Sequence record: NC_061450.1
Length of the DNA stretch: 64,000 nt
Reading direction: 5' to 3' (one strand)
Shown piece by piece: positions 4,383 to 51,270 of this stretch. Below the pieces are notes generated by a model. That model saw only the letters and a program-made list of their open reading frames with translations. It made no database searches and had not been told where the DNA came from. How positions within the stretch are numbered: the first letter of the stretch is position 1; each line of letters opens with the position of its first letter. The position numbers and the translations under genes were made by a program.

Positions 4383-6401
4383 TTAACCGAATACGATGTT
4401 TGTTACTGCGAGATATGCCAAGTCGTTTGAATCACCTCGGTCACCGCCACCAAACGCATACAGCCAAATCTCTTCACCAGCAGGAATGTTGGTGTTGAAA
4501 GTAATCGTCTGCATCTGTGTGTTGGAGAAGACACGCTGTGCTGCACCACGACCTGCGTAGCGCTCAAAGATGGACATATCATGCCAGCTACCGTTGTTAC
4601 CATCAAAGCGCCACTGGAAAGTAATCTGCTTGATTGGCTTGACGAAGCTGTTGTTGAACTTGAGCCAGCCTTGTGAGCCACCCCAGAAGTTCATGTAGCC
4701 GCCGTTGTCGCTGTGAGTAGTCTCCACACCACCACTAACAGTACGGCCACCGTCTTGAGTAAACGCATATGCGAACCAAGGCAGGGCGTCTGCGAATGGA
4801 GGATTGGTTGCTCCACCTTCGATAACAACACAACGGTAAGGCACGAGGAAGTCACTAACATCAATCTTTGGAGGCTGCACTGGACAGTAAACAAAATACT
4901 GCCAGTCACAACCAATTGGTGCTGTGACGCGTACCACGATGTTTTGACGCAGAGTATGCTCAGGGTACTTCCAGAACTCCAACGTACCACTAGCTCCAGC
5001 AGGCAAGATCTCAGTGTCCAGCAAGTTCATTGCCTGATCGAACACTTCAAACTTGGTTGCAAAGCTACCGCTGTTTACCTGAACCAGACCTGCACGAATA
5101 TCAGTCTGACCACCAAGAGCAAAGCAGTCTTCCGTGATTGGGTGACCCATACTATTAACTGAATAGCTTTCACATGGGTGACGATACTCACGCGCACCAC
5201 GCTCGGAAGGACAATACAGGTTATAGTAGTTGGATGCCAGACTAGCGGCCGAGCCGAAGTCTTTGCTGACAACACGAATCATCAAGTCATAGCAAGCTGA
5301 CGTAGTTGGGTCAAACAGGAAGTAGAGATAACCATCACCTGTTTGTGCATCAAGCGTGGTAGCAATACGATGGCCTGAGTGATAGACCTCGATAAAGTCG
5401 AATGTTTCCCACGAGGTATAGTCGAGGTACATCCATCCGGCTACCACGCCAATGTAATGATAATACTCAAAGGCATTTGCATCCTGTATACGCTCAGCAA
5501 TAGGATACACTGATGCATGACAAGGAGCAGGGAAGATTGGCGTGCCTATGTAGTCAGGATGAACAACGTCAGGGAAGTTGATAACGTCATAGCTAAGCTG
5601 GCTGTTCAGTTCCAAATTACCACGGTCAGACGTTACGACCAAGCGTGGAGGAAACACTTGAAGTGACCAATGTGCACCAGGTTCTGTACGCACACGAATC
5701 ATGATGCGCATGTCATCTGCATCTGGGTCAAATTGGAACTTGATACGACTACGACCACCAACACGCCCACACGTTGAGGCAACACGTACACCCATGTGGT
5801 ATACGTCAACGCTCATGCCTTTGGCAACATAGGATGCGAACATGAGTTCAACAAATCCTTCGATGCTCGGCATGGCGAACACTGTTTCTGTTATGGCTGC
5901 ACCGCGACCGTGAACACTGGCATAAGGCAAGTTTGGGTTAGCATAAGTACCAAGTCCTGTGCGGGAACCGGCACCCACTGGGTCATAGGACTCGAACGTC
6001 TTGATACCAGGACGATTGATACTACGACCAGTAGGCGCTGCACCGTTGTTGATAAGACCAAAGCCAACACGTCCAGCATCAGGCAAGTCATAGCCAGCAG
6101 GATATCCAGCAAGCTGATCGTACTTGGGACCACGCGAGCCATCACCTGTACCACTGCCTTTCGTTTGTGACGTAGGCCCACCGCCGCACTCTCCTGTTTC
6201 GAGATTGAGGCAAGGGTCATCATACGTTGGGTCAAACGAGTCATCGATTGCGTGCCAACGCTTGCCATACAAGTTGCGCACACTAAACTTTTCAGGCAGC
6301 AACGGCGCCCAATCACCTTGCTGTGTGCGCACGTACATCGGAGTATCAATGCAGTCAAGCCAGGCGTTGTTCGCTCTGTTTCTAACACGAAAACGTGCCA
6401 T
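4383..6401 (-). CDS. Virion fibre-associated protein with three internal beta-sandwich-like repeats
   Basis: GGAG RBS; repeated motif G.....Y.S......VDVYH.G.R.A.T.....G...(I/L).F.FDP....(I/L)M.RV. Confidence 0.7.
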   Translation of the reverse strand: MARFRVRNRANNAWLDCIDTPMYVRTQQGDWAPLLPEKFSVRNLYGKRWHAIDDSFDPTYDDPCLNLETGECGGGPTSQTKGSGTGDGSRGPKYDQLAGYPAGYDLPDAGRVGFGLINNGAAPTGRSINRPGIKTFESYDPVGAGSRTGLGTYANPNLPYASVHGRGAAITETVFAMPSIEGFVELMFASYVAKGMSVDVYHMGVRVASTCGRVGGRSRIKFQFDPDADDMRIMIRVRTEPGAHWSLQVFPPRLVVTSDRGNLELNSQLSYDVINFPDVVHPDYIGTPIFPAPCHASVYPIAERIQDANAFEYYHYIGVVAGWMYLDYTSWETFDFIEVYHSGHRIATTLDAQTGDGYLYFLFDPTTSACYDLMIRVVSKDFGSAASLASNYYNLYCPSERGAREYRHPCESYSVNSMGHPITEDCFALGGQTDIRAGLVQVNSGSFATKFEVFDQAMNLLDTEILPAGASGTLEFWKYPEHTLRQNIVVRVTAPIGCDWQYFVYCPVQPPKIDVSDFLVPYRCVVIEGGATNPPFADALPWFAYAFTQDGGRTVSGGVETTHSDNGGYMNFWGGSQGWLKFNNSFVKPIKQITFQWRFDGNNGSWHDMSIFERYAGRGAAQRVFSNTQMQTITFNTNIPAGEEIWLYAFGGGDRGDSNDLAYLAVTNIVFG

Positions 6402-18224: not shown

Positions 18225-18245
18225 TCAGAACAGGACCATAGACGC

Positions 18246-18270
18246 AAAAATGGGCGACCGAAGTCACCCA
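18246..18270 (-). terminator. Rho-independent terminator
   Basis: TGGGTGAC-TTCG-GTCGCCCA-TTTTT. Confidence 0.9.
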
Positions 18271-18425
18271 CTTTGCCAATCTTGCTGTGCTGTAATCATT
18301 GGTCGCCAGGCGGCATGAGTTCCCGCGCTACGCTGTGCGCAGGATTGCTTCACGAGGCAACAGCGCCGTTGTTTGCGAGTCATTCTGTGCGTCCACAGGT
18401 TGTGTTAACTCGCTAACGGCTGTAG

Positions 18426-18620
18426 CTAGATTGAGATATTTCCTTTCGCTCTTTTTAATGTCGCTCGTCGCTCCCACATCCCTCGAACGTGTGCCTCGGT
18501 CTCCGTAGAGACATAAGCCGGAGCGCGTGTTTCGCTGATAACTACGCGCCTAATATCATCAAAACATGACTGCTTGCCGAGCAAACAAACAGCCAAGAGC
18601 GACAGGATAAATGCGAGCAT
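18426..18620 (-). CDS. Hypothetical protein with a hydrophobic N-terminus
   Basis: ORF with GGGGAA upstream; MLAFILSLLAVCLLG signal/TM-like. Confidence 0.4.
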   Translation of the reverse strand: MLAFILSLLAVCLLGKQSCFDDIRRVVISETRAPAYVSTETEAHVRGMWERRATLKRAKGNISI

Positions 18621-18984: not shown

Positions 18985-19141
18985 CGGGACCACCAGCATC
19001 TTGAGCAAACTCACCATCCATCACATACTGACGGAACTCTTCGGCCGTGTTGCAGGCAGGCTCGACAAACTCACAATCGAATGCCTCTTCCATTTCTTGG
19101 ATGTTGAAATCAACACCATCATTACTTTGATTTTTCTGCAT
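18974..19141 (-). CDS. Small acidic hypothetical protein (55 aa), below the ORF-track cutoff
   Basis: Hand translation MQKNQSNDGVDFNIQEMEEAFDCEFVEPACNTAEEFRQYVMDGEFAQDAGGPDDC; fills the gap between two ORFs. Confidence 0.55.
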   Translation of the reverse strand: MQKNQSNDGVDFNIQEMEEAFDCEFVEPACNTAEEFRQYVMDGEFAQDAGGPDDC

Positions 19142-19334
19142 CAGCTTTGTCCAGAGCGGCGCGTACTAAACAGTCTTTCGCTTCAAGCAGTTTGCGAAGA
19201 CCGGCGGACTTTTCAGCACTATCAGGCAGTGTGTTGTCCATCTGAGTTGCCAGTTCACCGATAGGTCTGGATACTTCCTGCAGGAAGCCAGGCAAGTGAT
19301 CGAACTTGAAATACTTCATGATAGGACTAGGCAT
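19122..19334 (-). CDS. Small helical-hairpin protein; candidate Acb2/Tad1-like nucleotide-signal sponge
   Basis: YFKFDHLP..LQEVSRPIGELA..MDNTLPDSAEKSAGLRKLLEAKDCLVRA. The S.EKS.GL.KL.EA motif recalls Tad1 (SRENACALTHVEEA). The fold link is inference. Confidence 0.55.
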   Translation of the reverse strand: MPSPIMKYFKFDHLPGFLQEVSRPIGELATQMDNTLPDSAEKSAGLRKLLEAKDCLVRAALDKADAEKSK

Positions 19335-19752
19335 TTACAGTCTCCAGACTTTTCAAGAACAGGTTGCGTGCATTGCACAGATACTGATAAGCAAAAAACT
19401 TATCAGCACGCTCGTTAAGATCTGAGTCCAGCTTGATAACAAGCTCACTGATAGCCTGAGTCACACTGAGACTTGCGTCGGTGGTGCTATCGATTGTTGT
19501 CAGCACGTCAAACAGAGTACGGCAATCAGCCTCAGACAAGGCAGACTCTGTTTGACGACCTAGGCAATACCACAGTTGATTGCGTGCCCACAACAAACGA
19601 CTTAGGCTCTCGCGGCTGGTGGCCTGAGTTGAGTTTCGGCCGAAGTTGTCTATGATCAAACGAGCAATATTGGACATAGGCTTGATGATGCGATCACGCA
19701 CTTCATCAGTTGCAGTGCTGTCCAGATCAAACGATTCCAGATTAACTGACAT
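19327..19752 (-). CDS. Tandem two-hairpin paralogue of the adjacent 70-aa protein
   Basis: Both halves (KPMSNIARLIIDNF...SLSRLLWARNQL; QAISELVIKLDSDLNERADKFFAYQYLCNARNLF) align by eye to RPIGELATQMDNTLPDSAEKSAGLRKLLEAKDCL. Confidence 0.7.
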   Translation of the reverse strand: MSVNLESFDLDSTATDEVRDRIIKPMSNIARLIIDNFGRNSTQATSRESLSRLLWARNQLWYCLGRQTESALSEADCRTLFDVLTTIDSTTDASLSVTQAISELVIKLDSDLNERADKFFAYQYLCNARNLFLKSLETVNA

Positions 19753-19754
19753 AT

Positions 19755-19980
19755 AAGTTTACCCTGTATTTGGTGTCAACCAGATACGCACTCAAGGTGA
19801 AAGCATGAATGCGCACCAGGTTGTCTTTCCAACTGCCAGCTCGACGAGCGCCCGTCTCCCAACTGAGATAGGTATCGCCCACTGTCTTTGACCCTACTGC
19901 AAGGTTTCGTTTATCGGCTAGAGGTGTTAAGGGCACCTCAGGCTCTAAACTACAGTATGTCCAGCTGCGGATGTTATCCA
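19755..19980 (-). ncRNA. Putative structured ncRNA or leader, unit B
   Basis: Hairpins GAGGTG/CACCTC, GCTC/GAGC, GTAT.TGGT/ACCA.ATAC; shares AGCCTGAGG and a 23-mer with unit A; the overlapping 79-aa ORF has a GTG start and no SD. Confidence 0.45.
19851..19873. repeat. 23-nt direct repeat, copy 1 (cccgtctcccaactgagataggt)
   Basis: 22/23 identical to 20137..20159. Confidence 0.95.
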
Positions 19981-20019
19981 CTTATTAAGTACATTTGACA
20001 CTAGGCGAGAAAATTGAAA

Positions 20020-20430
20020 ACAGGAAAAAACTAGCCTGCGTCTTCGATGTGTACTCCGCTTGTCACCGTGAACGATTCATCATGTTTCCTACGATGTAGA
20101 CTCCTGCAAGAATCTACAAAGGGCCTCATATCGGTTCCCGTCTCCCCACTGAGATAGGTCTAACCTCCACAAGTTTTAGAGCACGCAACATGACAAGTGC
20201 TGGGAGACACTTGGACCAGGTAGCCGCGTCAATTCCTCAGGCTGTTATTGGCACTCACTTTTAAGACGTTTACTTGAACAGCGCCTTTCACAGACCAACG
20301 TCAAACCAGTTGAGAAATCTGTGTGGCTGAAACAATGCCGAACAAGTGCCGCAGGATAGAAGGCGTGGCAGACATGCCTTCAAGAGTAATCAAGCATTAG
20401 CCAGTGCGCTGAATCACTCGCTGCTACTTG
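20020..20430 (-). ncRNA. Putative structured ncRNA, unit A
   Basis: No ORF >=60 aa on either strand; dense hairpins GAAGGC/GCCTTC, CACAGA/TCTGTG, AAGTG/CACTT, TGTAGA/TCTACA; preceded by a terminator and TGTAAATA; ends near a T-run. Confidence 0.5.
20137..20159. repeat. 23-nt direct repeat, copy 2 (cccgtctccccactgagataggt)
   Basis: 22/23 identical to 19851..19873. Confidence 0.95.
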
Positions 20431-20442
20431 CTATCTAATTAA

Positions 20443-20450
20443 TATTTACA
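20443..20450 (-). promoter_or_regulatory. T4-late-like promoter TGTAAATA
   Basis: One mismatch from T4 TATAAATA; the same octamer occurs at 51260..51267, upstream of the ligase. Confidence 0.4.
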
Positions 20451-20464
20451 GATTTATCTGAAAC

Positions 20465-20501
20465 AAAAATGGGGCAAGAAAAATAAATATTTTCCGCCCC
20501 A
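20465..20501 (-). terminator. Rho-independent terminator
   Basis: TGGGGC...GCCCCA-TTTTT after the 591-aa gene. Confidence 0.75.
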
Positions 20502-20506
20502 CTCGG

Positions 20507-22282
20507 TTAGAACATAGATTTACGCACTACGTTGTTATACAGCACATCGTACGGGCTGCCAAACAGTTCTGGACCACGTTGAGCACGCACAGTAACCATG
20601 CCGGTGTGGATGTTGATATTGGTGATTTCAACAGTAGGCTGCTTGGGCTTGATAGTCTCATACGCAGGACTGTTGAGCGTAGGCTGTTCAGCCACCAGCC
20701 GTTCAATGCTTGCACGCTGTTCCGCAGTTGGATTAGGCAGCTTGAAGCGAATCTCTGCGACCTTGTTGCCTCTGACTGAGGTTACTTTGCCACGCATATC
20801 AACGCCCTGTTGAACCAGGTAAGCAGCAATGCGGCGCGAGCCAGCAACAACACGATCATACAGGTCATCGGTCATAACAGGAGCAGCAAAGCGAATCGCA
20901 TTACCCGGCTGCTGTTCAGATAGGTGCAGGCCAGTAACAAAGAAGCCTTCGCTGATAAGACGTACCAGAGTTTCGACAATCTTGCCTTCGTTCTCTGCAA
21001 TGGCAGGCACAGTAAGTTCCGGCGCACCAGTAGCAGGCTCGACATACTCAGGAGCCTCATAGCCTTCTGCACCAGCTACCTGCATACCAACTTGTTGAGC
21101 ACGCGGATAAGCTGAACGCAACAGACCACTAGCGCGAATGATAATGCGACCGTCACGAGCAAGGTCAAACAGTTCATCATTGCTAGAGGTCTGGAACATG
21201 AAGTAATCAACCGGGCTGGTCATCGCGCTGATAGCACGACGGGCCTGTTCCTGTACCTGAGCCGCTGTTGAGCCAAACACGATACGACTGCGGTTTGGAG
21301 TTGCAGGACTGACAGCAAAGAACGCACCGTAAACAACGCTCAGAGACTTGCTGCCTTTGAGTGGTGCAACGCTTTTGGCTTTCTTAGCATTCTCCAGCTT
21401 AGGCAGTTTGATGCCTACTTCGCGGCCTTTGGCGATAGCGCGTGGACTTGTCTGTGCTTTGACTGAGGCAAGAATCTTATCAAGATCACCTTGGCTAACA
21501 ATCTTCTCAAGAGGCACAACCAGGTTCTGCGCAAGATAGTGGCGCTTGCGGAACATGTACACGGAAGTGCCTTTCTTGATTTGCAGAGGCTGTGCCATGT
21601 TGCGACTGACTTCGCCTACAGGTTCAAACGTTGCTTCACGATTAGCACCAACACAGCCAAACGCTTTAGGCCAATCAGACTGTCCGATGAGGTTGGCTGC
21701 ACGCACATGACCACGCACAACAAACTTGATCTTGGGTTCGTCATGCGTAACCAGTTCATAGCTATCACGGTTGAGATACGTCAGGCTGAACTTCTCGCCT
21801 TTGGTCAGTTCCAGTTCGTACTCATCATGAGCATCATCAATGGTCATGCGACGACCTTGATACGTTGCCCACGTGCGTGTTGCTGATTCACTGGCAATCA
21901 ACATCTTGCCAGTAACGTCACTGCTGGTGGTTGCGTAATCGATAGCAGCCTGCAGGACGTCGCGACGATCAACAACTGGCAGAGCGGTGCGTTGTGGATG
22001 CAAGGCGATGTGAACAGCCTTTGACGCAGACATAAACGCAGTCTGTCCATTGTCCAACGTACCAGCAAACTTCATGCCGCTGAGGCGCTCAATAGTTGCA
22101 GCACTCACGCTTGGAAAGTTAACAAAGTCACCAGGAACAAACTCACGGACTTCGCCGTTGCCCCATGCATAAGCGGCTGTAGCGCTTAGTCCCACATACA
22201 TATCTTTAACGCGACTGATGGTATTCACTACAATCCCGAGATCGCGATGAAGACGATTGCCTTCCTTTTTAATCAGAGCCAT
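20507..22282 (-). CDS. Hypothetical protein, probably virion-internal; contains the shared W..(Y/F).G.R domain
   Basis: Long ORF with RBS; internal domain aligns with 35295..35975 and 51271..53148; GLSA at residues 31-34. Confidence 0.75.
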   Translation of the reverse strand: MALIKKEGNRLHRDLGIVVNTISRVKDMYVGLSATAAYAWGNGEVREFVPGDFVNFPSVSAATIERLSGMKFAGTLDNGQTAFMSASKAVHIALHPQRTALPVVDRRDVLQAAIDYATTSSDVTGKMLIASESATRTWATYQGRRMTIDDAHDEYELELTKGEKFSLTYLNRDSYELVTHDEPKIKFVVRGHVRAANLIGQSDWPKAFGCVGANREATFEPVGEVSRNMAQPLQIKKGTSVYMFRKRHYLAQNLVVPLEKIVSQGDLDKILASVKAQTSPRAIAKGREVGIKLPKLENAKKAKSVAPLKGSKSLSVVYGAFFAVSPATPNRSRIVFGSTAAQVQEQARRAISAMTSPVDYFMFQTSSNDELFDLARDGRIIIRASGLLRSAYPRAQQVGMQVAGAEGYEAPEYVEPATGAPELTVPAIAENEGKIVETLVRLISEGFFVTGLHLSEQQPGNAIRFAAPVMTDDLYDRVVAGSRRIAAYLVQQGVDMRGKVTSVRGNKVAEIRFKLPNPTAEQRASIERLVAEQPTLNSPAYETIKPKQPTVEITNINIHTGMVTVRAQRGPELFGSPYDVLYNNVVRKSMF

Positions 22283-51259: not shown

Positions 51260-51267
51260 TATTTACA
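51260..51267 (-). promoter_or_regulatory. T4-late-like promoter TGTAAATA
   Basis: Intergenic; matches 20443..20450. Confidence 0.4.
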
Positions 51268-51270
51268 GCA

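Follow-up and report, generated by a model that had tools for sequence, protein, structure and literature searches.

A large noncoding RNA with two homologous structured modules in Erwinia phage pEa_SNUABM_5 and related jumbo phages

Introduction

The described systems closest in kind to the RNA reported here are GOLLD, ROOL, OLE and raiA, with which it has in common a length above 500 nucleotides (nt), many co-varying helices, a pseudoknot (predicted in the present case), carriage by phages, an unknown function, and conserved loops that could make tertiary or intermolecular contacts. GOLLD and ROOL are still without a function, and, to our knowledge, few RNAs this large with strong comparative support exist in phages. 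We analyzed a stretch of 64,000 nt from sequence record NC_061450.1 (the window), which belongs to Erwinia phage pEa_SNUABM_5 (MW366843.1; Rivsvirus; 267 kb), and describe at positions 20435-19771 of its minus strand a noncoding RNA of ~0.65 kb that consists of two homologous modules and whose secondary structure is conserved and in part pseudoknotted. In contrast to GOLLD, ROOL, OLE and raiA, this RNA has no Rfam match, is restricted to Erwinia, Dickeya and Yersinia jumbo phages, and is organized by tandem duplication, with 1 to 3 copies of the unit.

Two other kinds of RNA resemble the locus in layout. Type III toxin-antitoxin systems (ToxI) and phage pseudo-antitoxins also place a repeated RNA upstream of a small protein gene, and do so in phages of the Erwinia/Pectobacterium group. 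Unlike ToxI, the repeats described here have a period of ~286 nt and only a 23-39 nt core in common, a repeat search detected no short head-to-tail array and a single large family, the two box copies, and the 141-amino acid (aa) protein encoded downstream has no ToxN-like, Pfam, PHROG or PADLOC match. CRISPR-repeat mimics (RNA anti-CRISPRs, solitary repeat units) likewise are repeated conserved hairpins encoded by phages, whereas the repeat in pEa_SNUABM_5 is embedded in a large co-varying fold. No near-identity between this repeat and a host CRISPR repeat was found in GTDB or E. coli genomes, a comparison that did not include dedicated Erwinia amylovora arrays.

Searches of Rfam 15 at the gathering threshold returned no match in the whole window or in eight relatives, in agreement with a preliminary description of the window in which the RNA was not recognized as any known family. 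With relaxed settings, positions 19600-20600 gave three chance-level matches (E 1.3-7.9), all far below threshold, and ARAGORN found no tRNA or tmRNA genes in the window. No paper on this RNA was found in the literature; it may be among the more than 10,000 candidate viral RNAs catalogued in 2023 (PMC10690425). We conclude that the RNA is a new family, not in Rfam 15, inside a known kind, the large structured phage RNAs of unknown function.

Results

Two repeated elements mark a gene-free stretch

Positions 19700-20520 of the window correspond to 81700-82520 of the phage record with 100% identity, and the sole DNA relative of the region in the phage collection is Yoloswag. All genes around the locus lie on the minus strand. 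The gene-free stretch is bounded by an intrinsic terminator (20500-20461) and by the start codon of the 141-aa gene (19752), and the longest open reading frame (ORF) within its 0.7 kb is 79 aa, in the same frame as a 47-aa coding sequence (CDS) annotated in GenBank (19882-19742). The preliminary description had reported about 700 nt without a convincing gene, lying between a terminator and an operon of small genes, and this was borne out by a z-score of -4.9 for the terminator and by the lack of any conserved frame.

The repeats reported at the same time are real. A 23-nt sequence, here called the box, is found on the minus strand at 20159-20137 and 19873-19851, with 22 of 23 positions identical and a spacing of ~286 nt. 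When up to three mismatches were allowed the 64 kb contained exactly two copies, whereas 100 shuffles gave none, and at the level of the exact pattern the 267 kb genome of pEa_SNUABM_5 contained no copy beyond the two at the locus. The shorter sequence AGCCTGAGG is also present twice on the minus strand, at 20243-20235 and 19944-19936; the second copy is not a homologue of the first, and was found only in pEa_SNUABM_5 and in one metagenomic relative (L007). A different motif does recur in both units: ~100 nt before each box is CTTAA..AGTGR..TAACANCC (20265-20240 and 19989-19969), with two occurrences in the window and none in shuffles. As RNA this 5' motif reads CUUAA.AAGUGR..UAACANCC and is present once per module. 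The relatives L013 and Y3 carry an intermediate form of it, indicating that the two versions in the window are homologous.

Compensatory changes support a conserved fold on the gene strand

Because the box pattern matched only pEa_SNUABM_5 and Yoloswag in IMG/VR, relatives were collected by way of the upstream 591-aa protein (Pfam KMPT-N), which yielded 28 cluster representatives with 100% to 41% identity. The loci compared comprised 12 metagenomic ones (L006-L014, L019-L021) and those of Alexandravirus, Sasquatchvirus (Y3), Snuvirus, a Yersinia phage and Yoloswag from GenBank. Ten close relatives were aligned in two halves, A2 and A3, and pairs were predicted with RNAalifold. The predicted fold contains 22 pairs in A2 and 69 in A3, for a total of 91, and 33 of these (9 and 24, respectively) are compensatory, with both sides changed and pairing kept in at least one sequence. 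The fraction of cells that were paired was 96.3% in A2 and 95.2% in A3, compared with 35-53% in both halves after the 3' partner was slid by 1-3 columns; sliding also lowered the number of pairs with double changes, from 9 to 1-4 in A2 and from 24 to 4-9 in A3. None of 500 shuffles of either half equaled the observed percentage paired, the number of double-change pairs or the covariation score. The preliminary description had proposed that an RNA fold is duplicated here, its core conserved and its inserts variable, with covariation as a check, and the strong covariation observed supports that proposal.

The fold includes many invariant U-G and G-U pairs, which would become A-C on the opposite strand, indicating that the RNA strand is the gene (minus) strand, as had been proposed. 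The sense sequence folds with -179.7 kcal/mol (z -1.78; 4 of 100 shuffles were as good), and the antisense sequence with -151.7 kcal/mol (z +0.36). Compensatory changes that exceed the controls and favor one strand are what is generally expected of a conserved structured RNA, and both features were found here.

We also examined coding capacity. All three frames are stopped in all ten aligned sequences, and most insertions and deletions have lengths not divisible by three. For the frame of the 47-aa CDS, substitutions in nine relatives were distributed 59/56/66 over codon positions 1, 2 and 3, and seven of the nine reach an early stop when read from the homologous start codon. The 79-aa ORF has no PHROG or Pfam match, and the suggestion that its translation might account for the conservation is contradicted by these stops and by the absence of a codon-position bias. 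In the RNA, pEa_SNUABM_5 and Yoloswag share identical blocks of 27-29 nt; the flanking proteins of these phages are 63% (591 aa) and 36% (141 aa) identical. From these comparisons we conclude, with high confidence, that the locus specifies a structured RNA under selection.

The box is a near-invariant bulged hairpin

A covariance model of the box (R1) detected exactly two copies in the window, 20168-20130 and 19882-19844 (E ~1e-18):

20130-20168, minus strand: box element 1, with an outer stem, bulge AGA, 8-bp stem 20158-20151/20144-20137 and hexaloop AGUGGG (R1 54.5 bits, E 3e-18)
19844-19882, minus strand: box element 2, with outer stem GGGCG/CGCUC, bulge AUA, the same 8-bp stem and hexaloop AGUUGG (R1 53.8 bits, E 5e-18)

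When 25 copies from the window and its relatives were aligned (A4), each proved to be a bulged hairpin. The outer stem has 5-7 bp and all seven of its pairs co-vary; in box 2 of the close relatives, double changes are seen in five of five outer pairs. It is followed by a bulge of 3 nt on the 5' side (A-G/U-A), an inner stem of 8 bp that is nearly invariant and has U-G as its third pair, and a hexaloop R-G-N-N-G-G. Where the inner stem does change, which is rare, the change is compensated (unit 2 of L008, unit 3 of L013, L021 and the Yersinia phage). The number of boxes varies among relatives and the box sequence does not. The invariance of stem, hexaloop and bulge across lineages whose neighboring protein is 42% identical suggests that the element is recognized in a sequence-specific manner, rather than serving merely as a structural helix. 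The box arms have no antisense targets within the window.

Each unit surrounds its box with variable, co-varying helices

The remaining elements of the RNA, in 5' to 3' order, are as follows:

20324-20435, minus strand: 5' variable segment of the RNA, which aligns poorly among close relatives
20289-20323, minus strand: hairpin S1, arms 20323-20316 and 20296-20289, loop 20315-20305; seven of eight S1 pairs changed on both sides
20240-20265, minus strand: unit 1 5' motif, CUUAAAAGUGAG..UAACAGCC, with AGCCTGAGG (20243-20235) as its end (pattern match and alignment)
20183-20229, minus strand: unit 1 variable hairpin domain, closing helix 20229-20225/20187-20183 (helix 2 of A2; double changes in three of five pairs, 98% paired)
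20095-20118, minus strand: variable hairpin predicted after box 1 (consensus and single-sequence folds), with a different sequence in every relative
19987-20067, minus strand: start of the second domain, with strand GGUGACAAGC (20067-20058) and helix 20056-20050/19993-19987 around a variable hairpin (A3)
19969-19989, minus strand: unit 2 5' motif, CUUAAUAAGUGGAUAACAUCC (pattern match), with a small hairpin 19981-19978/19970-19967 (helix 4 of A3)
19891-19960, minus strand: unit 2 three-tier stem, 19960-19952/19900-19891 and 19950-19946/19913-19909 (helices 5-7 of A3; double changes in 11 of 15 pairs)
19816-19835, minus strand: GAAAGA-loop hairpin, invariant in 10 close relatives
19783-19817, minus strand: 11-bp hairpin with a conserved GCUUUCACC loop (99% paired, four pairs with double changes in 10 sequences)
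19772-19781, minus strand: 3' strand GGUUGACACC, invariant in nine of 10 close relatives; no conserved element follows it, and the first ORF starts 20 nt farther on

In unit 1, the S1 loop pairs with 20242-20235, the end of the 5' motif, and three of the five loop pairs have changed on both sides, which is predicted to form either a pseudoknot or an alternative pairing. A second strand of the S1 loop, GACGU (~20302-20298), pairs with ACGUC (~20266-20262), and the two co-vary in relatives when judged by eye. These results bear on the pairing of CTGAG with CTCAG in both units that the preliminary description had suggested, which the alignment and the pair counts reject on comparative grounds. 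The GCCUG(AGG) segment of unit 1 pairs instead with the upstream loop, with CG in six sequences, UA in three and GC in one at the key pair; the GAGG letters of unit 2 are stem nucleotides of a local CCCUUAA-loop hairpin; and CUCAG is the end of the 5' arm and the start of the loop of the box's own hairpin.

In the second domain, helix 3 of A3 (20056-20050/19993-19987) shows double changes in three of seven pairs and is 98.6% paired. The 5' motif of unit 2 is found also in L013, L021, Y3, the Yersinia phage and the Alexandraviruses. The CCCUUAA-loop hairpin (19939-19921) stands on the three-tier stem and has a different stem in each relative, and the second copy of AGCCTGAGG (19944-19936) overlaps its 5' arm.

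The 3' domain folds with a z-score of -2.99. The stem of its GAAAGA-loop hairpin co-varies in L013, L021 and the Yersinia phage, where GUUG/CAAC is replaced by GCUG/CAGC, and compensatory changes extend to nine of the 11 pairs of the 11-bp hairpin once distant units are added. The 3' strand 19781-19772 has two candidate partners, 20067-20058 and CAACC at 19823-19819, the latter doubling as the GAAAGA hairpin's 3' arm. The shared CAAC strand and both its partners have changed together in the Yersinia unit, which hints at two exclusive conformations. The GAAAGA loop and the GCUUUCACC loop (19816-19835 and 19794-19806, minus strand) are complementary over 5 nt, and both loops are invariant in the 10 relatives and in the Yersinia unit; a tertiary contact between the two loops is possible.

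The RNA keeps its genomic position in jumbo phages of Erwinia, Dickeya and Yersinia

Wherever the contig was long enough, the 0.7-1.45 kb that follow the 591-aa gene contain no gene or tiny, scattered calls; the contig of L012 stops ~660 nt past the gene. The exceptions are L009 and L019, with longer calls of 196 and 171 aa, which we read as over-extended gene calls. Farther downstream the relatives encode baseplate proteins (PAAR spike, gp25-like, gp6-like). The box is present in two copies in the Rivsvirus/Yoloswag clade and in L011, three in L013 and L021, and one in Y3. In L013 (4305-5740) and L021 (1804-3300), the most distant relatives, a copy of a promoter-like motif precedes each of the three units, suggesting that the units may be separate transcripts there. 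The Yersinia phage has two boxes, and its two units are split between the ends of its GenBank record. The linear-listed record of this phage, fHe-Yen9-02 (the ends of L027 and L031; positions 1 and 248678), begins inside the RNA locus, between units.

In the Alexandraviruses (L015, L016, L018, L028 and L029 in this comparison) the same position is occupied by a gap of ~1 kb (~4264-5330 in L016), which is 75-94% conserved in more than 30 Erwinia and Dickeya phages. It has in common with the window RNA the promoter-like motif, the AACAUCCGCAG motif, present twice, the CCCUUAA-loop hairpin and, from weak nhmmer matches, a CUUUCAC-loop hairpin. This gap is probably a divergent and larger second member of the family, with a remodelled box.

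Outside these phages the pattern was rare. The 5' motif plus box was found in IMG/VR in pEa_SNUABM_5 and one metagenomic contig, and the box pattern in JGI metagenomes gave the same contig and two partial chance matches. A degenerate 23-nt pattern searched against 185,579 representative bacterial and archaeal genomes in GTDB (596 Gb) produced one partial, chance-like match, to the inner part only, in a Sphingomonadales metagenome-assembled genome, and in blastn comparisons of the whole RNA and the box hairpin with E. coli genomes no host-like segment was seen. The RNA is a component of Erwinia, Dickeya and Yersinia jumbo phages, at the same genomic position.

The RNA is the constant part of a short transcription unit

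The features that flank the RNA are:

20461-20500, minus strand: intrinsic terminator of the upstream operon (591-aa KMPT-N gene), hairpin 20500-20471 and U-run 20470-20461 (-18.8 kcal/mol, z -4.87)
20436-20455, minus strand: promoter-like motif AAATCTGTAAATATTAATTA, 20 nt, found in all clades, Alexandravirus, Y3 and the Yersinia phage among them, right after the upstream gene
19742-19882, minus strand: GenBank CDS pEaSNUABM5_00121, a 47-aa hypothetical protein, overlapping with both box 2 and the 3' domain; probably not a gene
18243-18276, minus strand: terminator closing the unit, before a 41-aa gene and the PAAR baseplate gene (-22.1 kcal/mol, z -4.4)

The upstream terminator is kept in seven close relatives, and in Alexandraviruses the promoter-like motif overlaps the stop codon of the upstream gene. 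We infer that the motif at 20455-20436 is a phage promoter, with the transcript probably starting just downstream; a scan for sigma-70 promoters gave background levels only. The core of the motif, CTGTAAATA, occurs also at 51260-51268 (minus strand), 30 nt before the start codon of the DNA ligase gene, which suggests a promoter class common to the RNA and replication genes.

Terminators similar to the one that closes the unit are found at the same place in AD1 (L016, ~5521-5550) and L011 (~5512-5545). The unit thus consists of the promoter-like motif, the RNA, which makes up its 5' third, a variable set of tiny ORFs and the terminator. Between RNA and terminator there are six or seven small ORFs in the window, two tiny hydrophobic ones in L011 and one in AD1, and both L011 and the Alexandraviruses retain the RNA without the 141-aa and 70-aa genes. 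Since the downstream ORFs vary and the RNA stays, the RNA is the constant content of the unit. About 150 nt at 18276-18426 (minus strand), from the last small ORF to the terminator, are without a convincing ORF.

The small downstream proteins have no Pfam or PADLOC match and one of them matches PHROGs of unknown function, so that no support was found for the sponge or anti-defence label given to them in the preliminary description. The 141-aa and 70-aa proteins (19122-19752, minus strand) and a 128-aa protein of L013 (5752-6138) have a common C-terminal segment resembling …AEKSAGLRKLLEA…; the three form a small paralogous family (phrog_1761/5120), with function unassigned. GenBank contains further hypothetical CDSs in the RNA locus of relatives, some on the opposite strand (L027 4361-4788, L031 2242-2385, L018 4753-4914, L029 1430-1906), among them fHeYen902_001c-003c and 342c. 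Small hypothetical CDSs inside the RNA locus are probably not genes.

Discussion

The comparisons described above identify the RNA as the element that persists at this locus, and raise the question of what it does. We consider that it may be the main product of the unit and act as a folded, stable RNA, in which the invariant bulged hairpins (two here, one or three in some relatives) would be sequence-specific docking sites, most likely for a phage or host protein. An equally compatible variant is a compact fold of RNA alone, with the invariant stems as sites of tertiary contact. We prefer a stable RNA with invariant docking hairpins, including its RNA-only variant, because the RNA is what stays constant in the unit, the hairpin varies in copy number and not in sequence, and no expression platform is present; it is the best explanation overall, held tentatively and at slightly less than even confidence. 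More specifically, the RNA could be a scaffold or decoy that holds or titrates its partner during the phase between replication and assembly, a mechanism that is possible and for which our confidence is lower still.

Several observations weigh against a stable RNA of this kind. Between the RNA and the first ORF of the window there is no terminator or recognizable processing site, so the RNA may exist only as a 5' leader. The box is not recognizable in the Alexandravirus versions by covariance-model or pattern comparison, so that some members of the wider family can do without it. The long-range helix 20067-20058:19781-19772 (helix 2 of A3), which would close the second domain, is 95% paired and shows no double change in the close clade, and the whole RNA has a modest thermodynamic z-score. 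Lastly, sequence and profile comparison of the neighboring proteins with Pfam, PHROGs, PADLOC, NCBIfam and the PDB yielded only KMPT-N and PHROGs of unknown function, with no hint of RNA binding.

The alternative that survives best is that the RNA is a cis-acting leader, either a conformational switch near the first ORF or a processive antitermination element that, in the manner of lambda nut and the rrn leaders or, by analogy, HK022 put, would modify the RNA polymerase soon after the promoter and let it continue through the strong terminator at 18276-18243 into the baseplate genes. The arrangement has much in common with these systems: the RNA lies directly after the promoter-like motif with no terminator before the first ORF, a strong, conserved terminator stands between the unit and the late (baseplate) genes, and there are conserved hairpins with purine-rich loops. 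The two mutually exclusive partners of CAAC (19823-19820), both of which changed with it in the Yersinia unit, would fit a conformational switch. In addition, an octamer identical to lambda boxA, and a purine-rich loop (GAAAGA) like that of boxB, were found when the lambda letters printed in PMC2724277 were used for comparison. The octamer is located just 5' of the unit 1 motif (A2 columns ~96-104) in three of 10 relatives only, L014, L019 and L020. However, it is not conserved: L008, L011 and Yoloswag differ from it by one or two letters, the window, L006 and L007 lack 1 nt of it, and in L009 it is deleted. The segment is furthermore the 3' strand of a co-varying helix and would therefore not be single-stranded, in contrast to the conserved, single-stranded boxA of lambda-type sites. 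No short hairpin follows directly after the octamer, and the GAAAGA-loop hairpin is ~430 nt downstream (19835-19816). The box hairpin, with 8 bp, a bulge and a hexaloop, is unlike the 5-bp boxB; at 650 nt the RNA is ~10 times larger than lambda nut and far exceeds known antiterminator RNAs; and no N-like protein turned up, in analyses that included no search by name. The ribosome-binding site is free of conserved pairing, and the RNA is kept in relatives that have other downstream genes. We regard a cis-acting leader as somewhat unlikely.

Tandem riboswitches, in which each unit would be an aptamer (e.g., for a signalling nucleotide) that controls the small genes downstream, resemble the locus in having two homologous structured modules in a 5' leader upstream of ORFs, with conserved nucleotides concentrated in junctions and loops. 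However, no Rfam family appears at E 1 (the best of three chance-level matches up to E 10 has E 1.3), and no expression platform is present, in that there is no terminator/anti-terminator pair and the ribosome-binding site is not masked. Neither conservation nor pairing is seen in the stretch from the last helix to the start codon. Most of the invariant nucleotides are within a helix, which is unusual for aptamers, and the genes downstream are not kept as partners of the RNA, nor do they carry a defence or anti-defence signature. The proposal of a ligand-sensing leader for anti-defence genes finds no support: the downstream proteins lack PADLOC and Pfam matches and are replaced or missing in relatives that keep the RNA, and the ribosome-binding site lies outside all conserved pairing. 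We regard a pair of riboswitches as improbable.

A pair of self-cleaving or self-processing ribozymes, cutting the transcript into unit-length RNAs, would fit the tandem layout, the highly conserved core, the variable peripheral hairpins and the predicted pseudoknot. Against this idea, no Rfam ribozyme was matched at the gathering threshold or with relaxed settings, the conserved core takes the form of a regular helix and not of a junction, and no conserved candidate cleavage site was identified, making ribozymes a highly improbable explanation. Ribozyme, protein decoy and guide-like RNA had all been named in the preliminary description, and each is so far a conjecture.

The possibility that the locus functions as DNA, with the boxes as protein-binding sites, a replication origin or a packaging signal and the RNA structure incidental, was also raised in the preliminary description. 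A large gene-free stretch with repeated boxes would be expected of such an element, and the GenBank record of the Yersinia phage does begin inside the locus. However, the compensatory changes keep pairing and not sequence, on the other strand the invariant U-G and G-U pairs would turn into A-C mismatches, and the sense strand alone folds better than shuffles. The cumulative GC skew has no turn at the locus, and there are just two boxes, ~286 bp apart, with none elsewhere in the 64 kb. A DNA-level role is thus barely credible. Finally, a small gene as the cause of conservation, for which the annotated 47-aa CDS (or the 79-aa ORF) and a similar ORF in L006 might speak, is largely refuted by the codon-position counts, the early stops in seven of nine relatives and the indels that are not multiples of three, and has no family match.

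A stable RNA with invariant docking hairpins remains the explanation that we prefer. It is also conceivable, at a lower level of confidence, that the locus represents a new modular class of RNA, 0.65-1.4 kb in size and belonging to one lineage of jumbo phages, whose units are gained, lost and reshuffled, and which would work by itself as an RNA machine, either an ornate, self-assembling or self-docking fold or a conformational switch timing the change from replication genes to those of baseplate and tail.

For the annotation of these phages, our results mean that several GenBank hypothetical proteins at the locus are probably not genes. The RNA is present in cultivable phages of a well-studied plant pathogen, and natural versions exist with one, two and three units; together with the sharply defined, invariant bulged hairpin, this makes structure determination and identification of the partner directly feasible.

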